From positions 124,001-188,000 of IMG/VR virus record IMGVR_UViG_3300048625_000299: a DNA stretch of 64,000 nucleotides; one strand, written 5' to 3'. Below, piece after piece: positions 30,246-33,563 of this stretch (position 1 is its first letter; every line of letters starts with the position of its first letter). The notes under the pieces were generated by a model. The model saw only the letters and a program-made list of their open reading frames with translations, was not told where the DNA came from and searched no databases. Both the position numbers and the translations under genes were made by a program.

Positions 30246-30267
30246 GGCCCCTTTCGGGGCCTTTTTT
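30246..30267. terminator. Bidirectional rho-independent terminator
   Basis: GGCCCC-TTTC-GGGGCC-TTTTTT between convergent genes. Confidence 0.85.
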
Positions 30268-32665
30268 ATTGGAATGTTGGAATTGCTCCGCCCGTCTTAT
30301 ACCACGGCTGACCGAAAGAGTGTTTCTCTTTGTATATGCTGACTGGTGGTACTGATGGAGGCGTCTTCGAGCTGTTGCCGCCTGTAGGAGTAGATGGTGC
30401 TGCTGGTGATGCTGCAACAGCATTGCCAGGCAGGCTATCAAAGTTACCAGTAAACATATTGCTAAAGTCGTTGAACCCTCTAATCGTTTCCTGGAACCCT
30501 TGCAAGGCTGCAATCTGATCGTCCTTCAGTCCCATACTCTTCAAACTTCTAGTTTGAATCATCATCGGGGTGTCCGGAACGCCAGCAGCAGTCGCCCCTG
30601 CAGTAACGGCCATTGGGCTATTGACGTTACCTACATCGATGCCGGACCCGGACGCCACTGTCTTAGCATAGTTTGCGATCTCGACTGGGTTGGTCGAGGT
30701 ATGCCACTGCTTTAGGCCTTGAGCGATTGTCAGGTTAGCGTACAAGGGTCTTTCCCACTGACGACGTTGAGCCATTAAGCCAGCTTGCTTAGAAGGAAAT
30801 CTTGCAAATTGACCGCCGTCCGATGCTGTGTCGCCTGGTGCCCCGCCAAATTCCTTCATCCAGTTTGCAAACTTCAAGTTGCCTGGGTTGTTATTTCTAA
30901 ACGACATCGACCCAGGATACCAACCTTCAGCTTTTGCCTGGCCACCAAGGATTTGCGATTTCTCTTCTTCTGTCAGATCGCTGAATTTCAAAGTTAGCAG
31001 CGATCTGCGTGCTTCACCTGAAGCCTCTGGCTGCAAACCAGAAGGTGTTTCGGTTGGCTTTGCGTTGTTTGTCTGAGGGGTCGGAGTTGTGTCGGTCTCT
31101 GTTATGCTAGCACCAGTTGTTTTCGGTGTACGTAGTTTTCCAGCCGCATATGATGAAGCAGCAGTAACGCCAAATCCAACAGCAGCCGCACCAGCTGGCG
31201 TAATGAACGGGGTAAGAGCTGCAGAACCGATCGATCCAACAAGCCCCATAGCCTCCATACCAGCAGCAGCGTAATCGCCATTCTCGATATCATCATATAT
31301 CTGCGGAAGCGTCATAGCGACATTCAATGCGCCGAGAAGTTTACCACCATATTTCGAAAATATCGATCCTGCTTGTTTACCAGCATCGCCAACGGCACTG
31401 ACAGCTTCCTTGACTCTTACGCCAGCCTTTTCCATCGATGTGAGTTGGCCATTGGCAAGACGGTCCATCTTTGCCTGCTGAGCTACCGAACGTCCACCAG
31501 CATCGCCTGGGATGACAATACCACCAGCAGTCATTCTTTCCCCGACACGTAGAGGGGATGATGGAGCATTAGTGGGAACTTGCCATGGGGCAGCTGTTGC
31601 GGCAGCAGGTGCCGATGGCGTTACTGCTTGAGCTGCGTTGGCCGCACGGGCCGCGCCTAGTCTGTTGAGAGCGCCGACTCCCTTGTAGCTGCCATATAAT
31701 CCAGCTCCAAGTGTCGCGAGCCCAATCGATTCCTCGGAATATTGTTCGCCACCAAAGAATCCGCCAACACCGCCAAGGACACCACCAGTCCAACCGCCCA
31801 TCTTTTTACCTGCCAAGAACCCCATAGAGGCACCTGTCATGCCACCAAGGTTTTTCTTATTCAGTGGAAGATCTTTACCAGCAGCATCAGTGCCGACGCC
31901 GAGTCCTTCTTTGACGTATTTGGAGATGGTAGGACTGAGGTCTGCAAATGCTTCCTTGACGCCTTGAACGATTGCACCACCAACTGCTGTCCCTACATCC
32001 TTGGCTGTTTCTTTGATTTGGGTATTGAGCTGTTTGGACAATTCATCAGATGATGGCAACCCAGCGCCCTTAAGAAAATCTTCAAGGAAGTTCTTAATCT
32101 CGTCCTTATTTTTGTATATCAAACCACCAGCTGCAACGCCAAGACCAGCCTTAGCGATGGTGCCTAGGTTGCCAGACAACAGGTCTCCGAGGGACGATAG
32201 CATCCCTCCCTTATCACCTGCCTTCTCGTTCTTATTGTCGTTTGCGAACAAGGATCCGAGTGAGGATGGGGAAGATGCATATGGACGGTTGTCGCCAGCA
32301 TTTTTTGATATTTGGTTTTGCGCTTTTAGTTGCGCAGTGCTGAGACTACGAATATCTTTAAGTAGCGCATTCATGGAACGAAGTTGTGCATTCATCCCAC
32401 TGAGACTGCTTGCTGTAGTCTTGCTTACTTTCTTGATATCGACGACGTCGTCTTTTTGCTTTTTGTCTGTCGACTTGCTTCCACTACCTTGTTGCTTCTT
32501 ATACTCAGCAACAGTCTGTCTGATAATGGGGCCCACACCTAAACCCAGCTTATACAGCGATCCACGTGGATCGAATTGATCCATGACAGCTTCTTTAGCT
32601 GTTCTGGCTGCTCCCGTTACCGTCTTTCTGGTACCTTGTGCTGCTGCGTCTAGTATGTTGGCCAT
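30266..32665 (-). CDS. Tape-measure/baseplate-hub-like protein with NNPGNL muramidase-like domain
   Basis: Long Ala/Gly-rich helical sequence; FRNNNPGNLKF...FARFPSKQAGL motif; follows gp26/gp51. Confidence 0.65.
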   Translation of the reverse strand: MANILDAAAQGTRKTVTGAARTAKEAVMDQFDPRGSLYKLGLGVGPIIRQTVAEYKKQQGSGSKSTDKKQKDDVVDIKKVSKTTASSLSGMNAQLRSMNALLKDIRSLSTAQLKAQNQISKNAGDNRPYASSPSSLGSLFANDNKNEKAGDKGGMLSSLGDLLSGNLGTIAKAGLGVAAGGLIYKNKDEIKNFLEDFLKGAGLPSSDELSKQLNTQIKETAKDVGTAVGGAIVQGVKEAFADLSPTISKYVKEGLGVGTDAAGKDLPLNKKNLGGMTGASMGFLAGKKMGGWTGGVLGGVGGFFGGEQYSEESIGLATLGAGLYGSYKGVGALNRLGAARAANAAQAVTPSAPAAATAAPWQVPTNAPSSPLRVGERMTAGGIVIPGDAGGRSVAQQAKMDRLANGQLTSMEKAGVRVKEAVSAVGDAGKQAGSIFSKYGGKLLGALNVAMTLPQIYDDIENGDYAAAGMEAMGLVGSIGSAALTPFITPAGAAAVGFGVTAASSYAAGKLRTPKTTGASITETDTTPTPQTNNAKPTETPSGLQPEASGEARRSLLTLKFSDLTEEEKSQILGGQAKAEGWYPGSMSFRNNNPGNLKFANWMKEFGGAPGDTASDGGQFARFPSKQAGLMAQRRQWERPLYANLTIAQGLKQWHTSTNPVEIANYAKTVASGSGIDVGNVNSPMAVTAGATAAGVPDTPMMIQTRSLKSMGLKDDQIAALQGFQETIRGFNDFSNMFTGNFDSLPGNAVAASPAAPSTPTGGNSSKTPPSVPPVSIYKEKHSFGQPWYKTGGAIPTFQ

Positions 32666-32668
32666 TTG

Positions 32669-32863
32669 TTATTTTTGTTTCTTATTGTTAAGCCGTTCGG
32701 TCTCTTGCTCTAAGTAATCTTTCAATAAGTCTACGTAGATATCTCTTTCATATGGTATCATGTCCTCAAAGTCACGAATTGAGTAGTGATGATGCTGAGC
32801 CAAGTTAAAAAGCAACTGGTAGTAGTTGCTTATCGTGTTGTGGCTCAGCCCAATATAAAAAAA
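32669..32863 (-). CDS. gp51: Baseplate hub assembly catalyst gp51-like ORF, lacks a canonical start (not in ORF track)
   Basis: LSHNTISNYYQLLFNLAQHHHYSIRDFEDMIPYERDIYVDLLKDYLEQE; frame opens at the T7 run at the end of gp26. Confidence 0.8.
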   Translation of the reverse strand, partial: FFYIGLSHNTISNYYQLLFNLAQHHHYSIRDFEDMIPYERDIYVDLLKDYLEQETERLNNKKQK

Positions 32864-33558
32864 TCATTGAGGTTTTGTAAGACCACTTTCTTTTCTACAC
32901 CGTTGCTATTTGTATACGAAGTTTCGTAGTGTAGTTTCGGCATCGTTTCTAAAAACTTCTGAATCTCTTTGAATGTAGTGACGTCTAGAGATGTAATGAA
33001 ATCTACCAACTCTTCGTCAGTGTAATCTTTAGTATCATATACTTCATTTTCGTCGTATACTTTATCGATACAGTACTTGATTACTTCAAAATATAAGTCA
33101 ACTTCAGATGAAGCCTGTTCGACTGCTTTAAGCATGTCGGTCTTAGGATAACGCAAAACTAATCCGAGCTGATCGTTGATCTTGATATTTGAGTTGTGGT
33201 CGGGATTATTGATAATCTCAACTTTGTCAAGATCGATTTGTAGTTTATAATCTTGATCATCGTCTGGATCGCGGTACGTTACATCGATTACGTTGTTGAT
33301 TGAACGACCACGTAGCTTGATGAACAGGTATTCGAGATCGAATGTTGCTAGCTTGTCAACATCCACAGTATCCAACAGACAATTATTAACGACTTGTTTG
33401 ATAGCCAATACTACGTCCCTAGTGTTGCCGGTAGTTTGTGCTGTAAGTAAGATCTTTTCCTCTTTGACGAGGAACGGACGCATCTTGACTTTTGTTTTGG
33501 ATGAAGGAATAACAACTTCAAAGATAGGATAATTAATTTTAGGAAGACTCATTTTCAC
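32845..33558 (-). CDS. gp26: Baseplate hub subunit gp26
   Basis: LPKINYP.F...IPS...VKMRPFLVKEEKILL...LATFDLEYLFIKLRGRSI. Confidence 0.92.
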   Translation of the reverse strand: MKMSLPKINYPIFEVVIPSSKTKVKMRPFLVKEEKILLTAQTTGNTRDVVLAIKQVVNNCLLDTVDVDKLATFDLEYLFIKLRGRSINNVIDVTYRDPDDDQDYKLQIDLDKVEIINNPDHNSNIKINDQLGLVLRYPKTDMLKAVEQASSEVDLYFEVIKYCIDKVYDENEVYDTKDYTDEELVDFITSLDVTTFKEIQKFLETMPKLHYETSYTNSNGVEKKVVLQNLNDFFILG

Positions 33559-33563
33559 CTCAG

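Follow-up and report, generated by a model that had tools for sequence, protein, structure and literature searches.

A likely programmed -1 ribosomal frameshift in the gp26-like gene of T4-like phages

Introduction

Does the gp26-like gene of a T4-like phage encode one protein or, by a -1 ribosomal frameshift, two? The question is raised by a locus in the window, i.e. the whole 64,000-nucleotide stretch of viral DNA that was analysed here, in which a gp26-like gene ends shortly after a run of seven T and an open frame continues in the -1 phase. The frameshift in tail chaperones is among the most conserved viral recoding events. In a 2016 recoding review, the G-T frameshift was described as conserved in long-tailed phages 'except T4' (PMC5009743), and T4, the best-studied myovirus, is cited as the exception. 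For lambda, the -1 frameshift leading to gpG and gpGT goes back to Levin 1993 and to Xu, Hendrix and Duda 2004 (via PMC5009743), and gpGT ties the complex to gpV (PMC5009743). A T4 review counts gp26 and gp51 among the hub assembly chaperones and notes that the particle lacks gp51 (PMC3004832).

From sequence alone, the initial annotation had inferred that gp26 and a gp26-51 fusion are the T4-like equivalent of G and GT. This inference was supported by conservation, missing starts and fold, and a programmed -1 ribosomal frameshift of the lambda G/GT type in the gp26-like gene is considered likely, with no evidence at the protein level.

The gp26-like gene and its reading frames

The features of the locus are collected in Table 1. 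On the minus strand, the gp26-like gene ends with CTC AAT GAT TTT TTT ATA TTG GGC TGA, where the T7 run corresponds to A7 on the plus strand and the TGA at 32847-32845 is the 0-frame stop. The heptamer has the phase X_XXY_YYZ (GA[T TTT TTT]), and the UGA follows three codons further 3'; a CUG overlaps this 0-frame UGA. Beyond the TGA that closes it, the -1 frame reads FFYIGLSHNTISNYYQ... and stays open for 64 codons up to the TAA at 32671-32669. A slip would add 62 residues, giving a predicted long form of 294 aa. The initial annotation had given this gp26 end and placed the T7 run at 32857-32863, which held on direct reading, and had described a gp51-like frame lying at exactly -1 and closed by TGA just before the run, which held as well.

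Table 1. Features of the gp26-like locus, in window coordinates
Feature	Position	Strand	Remark or basis
gp26-like gene, 0 frame, chaperone short form	32845..33552	-	235 aa, including stop
Shine-Dalgarno GAGGTG before gp26 ATG 33552	33556..33561	-	direct reading
Slippery heptamer T_TTT_TTT, in phase with gp26	32857..32863	-	Phe-Phe codons at P and A sites
TGA closing the -1 frame, directly 5' of the heptamer	32864..32866	-	direct reading
-1 frame extension, 64 codons and TAA	32669..32863	-	homologous to T4 gp51 C-terminal domain
3' stimulatory stem-loop	32790..32852	-	folding and compensatory changes
799-aa tape-measure-like gene	30266..32665	-	position and size; tape-measure identity inferred

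As the start of gp26, the GTG at 33558 given in the open reading frame listing was rejected; the ATG at 33552 is the one with a GAGGTG. Because this GAGGTG shows that starts in the window phage are led by a Shine-Dalgarno sequence, the lack of one for the -1 open reading frame is worth noting.

The gp26-like protein matched PF12322 (T4_baseplate) with E 5.1e-57 and 193.5 bits, against a cut-off of 24.5, over positions 3-218 of 219, and phrog_150 'baseplate hub' with E 4.5e-65. Its 120 best homologues are all 235-241 aa long. Only one PF12322 gene is present in the complete window genome (234,864 bp, freshwater metagenome), and the tail-tube-like, gp2-like and gp4-like genes found upstream of it follow the usual T4-like order. 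A megablast of the locus against phage records gave no match, and the nearest relatives in these records reach only ~42% protein identity.

The length of the run was verified in contigs of two libraries, which showed zero differences and zero indels relative to window positions 32555-33400. One contig has a depth of 369. The other (5,291 nt, depth 97) originates from an independent freshwater metatranscriptome of a different study and is a consensus contig, blind to minority species. Since this independent library has the same T7 run, a homopolymer error was rejected; the exclusion of a read error, which the initial annotation had called for, thus found T7 in both libraries and no T6 or T8.

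Conservation of the heptamer and of the -1 phase

The comparison drew on 80 IMG/VR loci related to the window gp26 (43-100% identity) and on another 80 from the cyanophage clade, together with two genomes of KVP40-like phages and a dozen isolates that carry annotation. The in-phase heptamer and the -1 phase were kept at ~139 of 141 distinct junctions from very divergent T4-like lineages, freshwater phages among them, down to ~25% gp26 identity, so that the conservation across T4-like gp26/gp51 junctions, which had been proposed as a check, held.

In the window's clade, all 59 unique gp26 genes have an in-phase T_TTT_TTY 0-3 codons before the stop (T_TTT_TTT in 56, T_TTT_TTC in three). Elsewhere in the same genes, in-phase XXXYYYZ heptamers were found at only 69 of the 13,247 codon positions. 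A heptamer at 59 of 59 junctions is thus beyond chance. Phenylalanine codons elsewhere in these genes are TTT in 472 cases and TTC in 276 (37% TTC). Run-length variants also occur, namely T8 at two loci and T10 in one contig.

The cyanophage and KVP40-like set carries T_TTT_TTC at 72 of 73 unique junctions, and two smaller sets of relatives have a heptamer at 4/5 and 4/4 junctions. An in-phase site was also found in Ochrobactrum, Aeromonas (CC2-like), Rhizobium and Vibrio CZ01 phages, in Methylophilales and Sinorhizobium phages, and in two more cyanophages. In every case, the segment reached by the -1 frame comprises ~60 residues with the pattern ..SH..L.NYY...HHKYS....E...P.ER..Y...

Two exceptions were encountered. 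Ackermannviridae phage VAP7 lacks an in-phase heptamer, and its stop is overlapped by an ATG. In the complete genome L168, the T6 run is missing and the gene exists solely as an in-frame fusion, so that the short form may be dispensable in some cases. Natural in-frame versions are rare (P0217, L168, P0156 and P0177).

Coding evidence for the -1 extension

The extension matched phrog_634 'baseplate hub assembly catalyst' with E 5.5e-22 and, by BLASTP, residues 200-245 of T4 gp51 with E 3e-4. Its homologues amount to 634 matches among 1.84 billion representatives. For the gp51 C-terminal domain (Gp51_C, PF28602), which was absent from the Pfam copy used in the profile search, a weak precomputed match exists on the natural fusion P0217. 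Column entropy of the -1 frame was 0.80, 0.53 and 1.30 at codon positions 1, 2 and 3, respectively, as calculated over 61 gapless codons in 52 unique sequences, including ~34 codons before the first ATG of the window. This codon-position entropy shows that selection maintains the -1 frame of the extension as coding sequence from the heptamer onward. In the structural model of the natural fusion L168, the extension forms a helix-loop-helix hairpin with no specific structural match.

None of the 49 unique sequences of the window's clade has a -1-frame ATG 5' of the heptamer, and in 18 of these the -1 frame opens at the heptamer itself. An ATG, GTG or TTG before codon +8 is present in two of the 49, a Shine-Dalgarno sequence at none, and the first -1-frame ATG mostly lies at codon 34-45. 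As start codons are missing in this clade, independent initiation cannot supply the conserved N-terminal half of the extension. The initial annotation had stated that no ATG or Shine-Dalgarno sequence precedes the SHNTISNYY segment, which held for the window's clade with regard to ATG, GTG or TTG with a Shine-Dalgarno sequence. It had also named a start at CTG or TTG, together with relatives devoid of slippery sites, as a possible refutation; the relatives do have the sites.

RNA stem-loops downstream of the heptamer

The stem-loop of the window begins 4 nt past the heptamer, has a folding energy of -26.7 kcal/mol and a z of -6.6, and none of 200 shuffles was equally stable. Its outer stem of 12 bp (32852-32841 pairing with 32802-32794 and 32792-32790) holds the 0-frame UGA and encloses an inner hairpin of 8 bp. 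In the window's clade, a recurrent stem is formed by GGGCUGAGYCA, which starts 4-7 nt past the heptamer, and by UGRYUCAGC some 45 nt downstream of it. When this stem was scored on 52 relatives aligned without gaps, 85% of cells could pair, whereas sliding the partner gave 21-41%. Compensatory double changes were seen in 7 of 12 pairs, with 37 double-change cells against 3.1 in shuffles, and 0/500 shuffles reached 37. At pair 21-64, CG occurs 16 times, UA 16 times and UG 14 times, and column 21 is a silent third position.

In the main subclade of Synechococcus phages, another hairpin, GUAUGGCNCA ... UGNGUCAUAC, is found at an equal distance from the heptamer. The central pair of this hairpin is UA in 26, GC in 16 and AU in eight sequences, and 68.7% of cells pair against 26-42% when slid. 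Double-change cells numbered 40 against 15.7 in shuffles (0/500). Both clade-specific hairpins show compensatory changes and fit the canonical spacing of 4-9 nt in a -1 cassette. The stems were found by single-sequence folding and the pairs were counted afterwards; as the stems were derived from the same sequences, the pair counts are inflated, and a further caveat is that these regions are coding. RNAalifold on all 52 aligned sequences returned no consensus structure, and in the P-SSM7-like subclade neither hairpin is present.

A tail-assembly-chaperone fold in gp26

An AlphaFold2 model of the window gp26, calculated from a 136-sequence alignment, reached a pLDDT of 89.5 and a pTM of 0.83. 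It was compared by a structural aligner with 48,161 representative PDB chains without pre-filtering. The best matches were Geobacillus Rbstp2171 (3FGX, Z 8.1), the HK97 tail assembly chaperone (2OB9, Z 7.3), B. subtilis YqbN (3KLU, Z 7.0) and V. cholerae PLE1 TAC, a putative satellite chaperone (5IR0, Z 5.0), followed by a chain with Z 4.6. Among these, 2OB9 has been characterised, and 3FGX and 3KLU are published as uncharacterised proteins of the same tail-chaperone family. The top three superpose, over almost all of their own length, on gp26 residues 1-95 with 84-85 aligned positions and an rmsd of 3.8-4.2 A, and sequence identity of gp26 to the matched chaperone chains is only 9-17%. A second model, of the natural fusion L168 (~40% identical, pLDDT 90), retrieved the same top three chains.

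As predicted by the model, gp26 residues 1-95 have the tail-assembly-chaperone fold. A Z of 7-8 alone is modest, and the case rests on all top matches belonging to one functional family and on the replication with the second model. Searching PDB sequences with gp26, by sequence and by profile, yielded nothing relevant, Pfam on residues 1-100 returned PF12322 only, and Foldseek with the gp26 model gave no match at E <= 0.001, with 2OB9 as a weak lead.

Relation to T4 gp26 and gp51

Residues 1-206 of T4 gp26 match PF12322 with E 9e-64, and residues 1-201 of T4 gp51 do so with E 4e-52; the two T4 proteins are true homologues of the forms predicted for the window. In the family alignment, T4 gp26 stops (...EFFELL) exactly where the short form of the window stops (...DFFILG), both with FF and three more residues at the C-terminus. 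T4 gp51 continues into the extension, as do the predicted long form and two natural in-frame fusions. Since gp51 combines a gp26 paralogue with the extension, its counterpart is the long form, and the short form corresponds to gp26. The label 'gp51', which had been given to the -1 open reading frame, was thus only partly correct. Just the C-terminal ~50 residues of T4 gp51 correspond to this frame, and residues 1-201 are the gp26 paralogue.

Genes 26 and 51 of T4 are adjacent and transcribed divergently, and a gp26-gp51 fusion is therefore not possible in T4. There, two diverged genes exist without a frameshift, whereas the window phage has one gene that is predicted to give both forms. The Phe-Phe codons of T4 gene 26 are TTC TTT, with the T run broken, which makes this gene a natural control, because without a downstream extension the run is not kept. 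A single PF12322 gene was found in the window genome, in a KVP40-like genome and in each of two other complete genomes. Phage records with a full-length gp51 number 1,380 and belong mostly to enterobacterial and Acinetobacter phages, with some from Aeromonas phages; the orphan extension occurs in 495 phage records.

The downstream tape-measure-like gene

The ATG of the 799-aa gene lies 3 nt past the stop of the extension. At nearly all loci, the tape-measure-like start falls within -14 to +5 nt of the extension stop and is rarely preceded by a Shine-Dalgarno sequence. The 799-aa gene is syntenic in all lineages. Its product is Gly/Ala-rich with a lysozyme/glucosaminidase-like domain at about residues 565-690, and atlas leads pointed to a transglycosylase or a tail-tip lysozyme.

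Pfam, NCBIfam and PHROGs provided no family for this protein or for its counterparts in five other phages. BLASTP among these downstream proteins and against T4 gp29 was uninformative and gave no link to gp29. A T4-type tape measure was not found elsewhere in the window genome, in which PF25671 had no match. That the gene encodes the tape measure is thus inferred from its size, composition and synteny and from the lack of any other candidate in the genome, and the label remains an inference because no family model matches the protein. The location of the locus upstream of a tape-measure-like gene, as initially annotated, held with respect to position, and the tape-measure identity is only inferred. 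A predicted complex of gp26 with residues 1-560 of the 799-aa protein scored 0.00 without controls and is no evidence either way.

Proposed mechanism

In the mechanism proposed here, most ribosomes would read the gp26-like gene to the UGA and produce the 235-aa short form. The stem-loop 4 nt downstream would pause a minority with Phe-tRNAs on UUU UUU, and these paused ribosomes would slip one base back on U_UUU_UUU and go on in the -1 frame. The predicted product of 294 aa would consist of the same body and a 62-residue helical extension, the counterpart of the T4 gp51 C-terminal domain. If lambda gpG/gpGT and T4 gp26/gp51 are a guide, the role of the short form may be to coat the tape-measure-like product of the next gene. 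In the rarer long form, the extension may, by the same kind of analogy, link the complex to another hub or tube component. Neither form would be kept in the virion, an inference by analogy with T4 gp51, which is absent from particles.

The cassette and its conservation, the homologies of the predicted products and the fold are shown by the data above. It is probable that both forms come from a single gene in this phage and in most other T4-like phages, although the trans-frame product is unproven. Without proteomic data, its existence and the efficiency of the slip are inferred only. A bolder reading, which can be held only as a possibility, is that the one-gene frameshift is ancestral and general in the entire T4 superfamily and was replaced in the T-even group by duplication into genes 26 and 51, and that the slip couples synthesis of the tape-measure-like protein to that of the long form and matches the two in amount, because only frameshifted ribosomes would terminate at the tape-measure-like start.

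Alternative explanations

The domains could be made as two separate proteins, as GenBank records now have it, with the gp51-like peptide initiated on its own or by termination-reinitiation at a start-like codon near the stop. In favour of reinitiation, 44 of 67 cyanophage-clade junctions have an AUG at codon +5, the stop is overlapped by an AUG (UAAUG) in KVP40-like phages and in VAP7, the phage without an in-phase heptamer, and the CUG of the window overlaps the UGA. Gene callers also often predict open reading frames of 45-99 aa at the extension. Against separate proteins, only two of 49 sequences of the window's clade have a start-like codon before +8, none with a Shine-Dalgarno sequence, and annotated starts vary among records and remove the conserved N-terminal half. 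The invariant in-phase heptamer would be left without a role, and T4 gene 26, which has no extension, lost the run. Moreover, T4 gp51, P0217 and L168 carry the domain covalently C-terminal to a gp26-like body. Separate proteins are hence judged unlikely as a general explanation, but termination-reinitiation might add to slippage or replace it in some lineages.

Slippage of the RNA polymerase on the T7 run, by which some transcripts with one extra U would encode the fusion, is likewise improbable. It would accord with T7 in 56 of 59 sequences of the window's clade, with the T8 and T10 variants (two loci and one contig) and with the knowledge that homopolymer runs are slippage sites (PMC5009743). 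However, all 72 of 72 cyanophage and KVP40-like junctions have just T6 followed by C, the constant X_XXY_YYZ phase matters to the ribosome and not to the polymerase, and the conserved hairpins lie at a spacing typical of stimulators of ribosomal frameshifting. The metatranscriptome contig has U7, though a consensus hides minority species. An artefact, i.e. a homopolymer error or gene decay splitting one in-frame gene, is all but excluded. Homopolymers are error-prone, and rare in-frame versions exist (the four named above), but the two libraries agree on T7 without an indel, ~139 independent assemblies and isolate genomes share the phase, the 120 nearest homologues are all called at 235-241 aa, and T4 gp26 ends at the same residue position. 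A programmed ribosomal frameshift remains the preferred reading.

Comparison with known systems and implications

The arrangement resembles lambda G/GT in the in-phase heptamer a few codons before the stop, the C-terminal domain in the -1 frame, the shared body and the chaperone fold. If the 799-aa gene is the tape measure, as inferred, the location immediately upstream of the tape-measure gene would be shared with lambda as well. Differences concern the heptamer (U_UUU_UUU/C as compared with G_GGA_AAG in lambda), the strong 3' stem-loop of the window, and the assembly of the hub/baseplate of a contractile T4-type tail. The body of 235 aa is also about twice as long as solved chaperone chains (96-119 residues), with an extra alpha/beta region after residue ~95. 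P2 gpE/gpE+E', a myovirus form of this frameshift, uses the heptamer T_TTT_TTG. This system shares the contractile tail, a T-rich heptamer and, on the same inference, the location upstream of the tape-measure gene, but P2 E is much smaller and no sequence similarity was detected; the P2 sequences themselves were not compared. In E. coli dnaX (tau/gamma), a heptamer and a 3' stem-loop also set the ratio of two protein forms; there, the slip truncates the protein, whereas in the window it would extend it.

An annotation of slippage was found in none of 60 records sampled and in no other GenBank record examined, which confirmed, for the records sampled, the earlier remark that the link between gp26 and gp51 is not standard annotation. 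No report connecting T4-like gp26/gp51 to frameshifting was found in the literature searched, which did not cover subscription journals, so that a prior description is possible. The view of gp26, gp51 and gp28 as tape-measure chaperones is not new, as it is already contained in the annotation of Acinetobacter phage Berthold and in a 2010 T4 review (PMC3004832). The lambda-type mechanism itself is known as well; a frameshift in T4-like gp26 appears to be unreported in the literature covered.

If the frameshift is true, the T4 exception would be explained, as relatives would frameshift in gp26 and T4 would have replaced this by two paralogous genes. The puzzling T4 hub genes 26 and the 'catalytic' 51 would obtain a mechanistic role, with the last ~50 residues of T4 gp51 as a functional counterpart of the lambda T domain. 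Several hundred GenBank genomes would then be mis-annotated at this site (495 records with the extension). The affected records include essentially all marine cyanomyoviruses, KVP40-like vibriophages and rhizobiophages, in which the extension is either a truncated orphan open reading frame or lacks annotation. The site would also offer natural experiments in the form of two different hairpins, the in-frame fusions and what may be a reversed, dnaX-like version. The latter concerns the relative L089, in which the logic of the frameshift might be reversed in this way.

Natural fusions and a lineage without the heptamer

Two related loci encode the gp26-like body and the extension as an in-frame fusion. 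On a metagenome contig (L089), the long form, protein P0217, is encoded by the 0 frame; the former site reads A_TTT_TTC, followed by AAT TTT TTT TTT AGT. From its sequence, a -1 slip on this T10 run is predicted to meet TAG immediately and give a short form. The arrangement would thus be reversed, with a slip that shortens the product as in the logic of dnaX, but the slip is inferred and the case rests on one contig, in which an assembly error within the T10 run has not been ruled out. In the second fusion, from a complete genome (L168), the T run at the junction (..GLTSFWLGMAH..) is no longer than T5. That genome has no other PF12322 (gp26/gp51 family) copy, so that, barring a 2-nt contig error, this phage would make the long form alone.

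In Vibrio phage VAP7, an in-phase heptamer is absent at the end of the gp26-like gene, which reads CAC GTT TTT CGC TAA, and an ATG overlaps the stop. As inferred from the sequence, the small protein of this lineage is probably started independently.

Positions of features in the window and in related loci
Feature	Locus	Positions	Source
Paired stem-loop columns 19-21 and 64-66 of A1	window	32845-32843 and 32800-32798	
Extension stop to tape-measure-like start	window	32660-32675	
799-aa tape-measure-like gene	window	30266-32665 (-)	
Gp26-like gene and extension-like small ORF	L086	3190-3440	Vibrio phage VAP7, Ackermannviridae
Extra gene (110-140 aa across three phages)	L087	3311-3676	Rhizobium phage LG08
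Extra gene (as above)	L179	1125-1454	Methylophilales phage Melnitz
Extra gene (as above)	L180	1105-1524	Sinorhizobium phiM7
Gp26-extension in-frame fusion P0217, 298 aa	L089	6680-6730	ENA metagenome contig
In-frame fusion, 297 aa	L168	1201-2091	Complete 236-kb IMG/VR genome

RNA structure and protein sequence of the extension

In the alignment of the extension region (A1), Ser (AGY) at codon 7 accompanies Ala (GCU) at codon 22, and Asn (AAY) at codon 7 accompanies Ile or Val (AUU, GUU) at codon 22. The two residues appear coupled because their bases pair in the stem-loop RNA, and the protein sequence at these codons appears to be shaped by RNA structure.

The tape-measure-like gene and its surroundings

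In nearly all of about 100 related loci, the distance from the extension stop to the start of the tape-measure-like gene is between -14 and +5 nt. The window reads TAA CAA ATG at this junction, and the overlap (A/G)TGGCTAA is frequent in related loci. A Shine-Dalgarno-like motif precedes the start in only 15 of 103 loci, counted without control for its frequency at other genes. Since only frameshifted ribosomes reach that point, a possible coupling of tape-measure translation to the slip is suggested.

In LG08, Melnitz, and phiM7, the extension ORF is separated from the large tape-measure-like gene by the extra gene. This gene, of unassigned function, could be a gp28-like third chaperone.

The 799-aa product carries a lysozyme/glucosaminidase-like domain at residues ~565-690 (Atlas structure rows) and is suggested to be a 'transglycosylase' by Atlas features; its syntenic counterpart in cyanophage ACG-2014e bears the annotation 'endolysin'. 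The tail lysozyme of T4 sits in gp5 and not in gp29.

Functional naming is more advanced in the record of Acinetobacter phage Berthold (L176, MN709128) than in most T4-like records: 'tape measure protein assembly chaperone' is the shared label of gp26, gp51, and gp28, and gp25 is called 'tail sheath polymerization initiator'.
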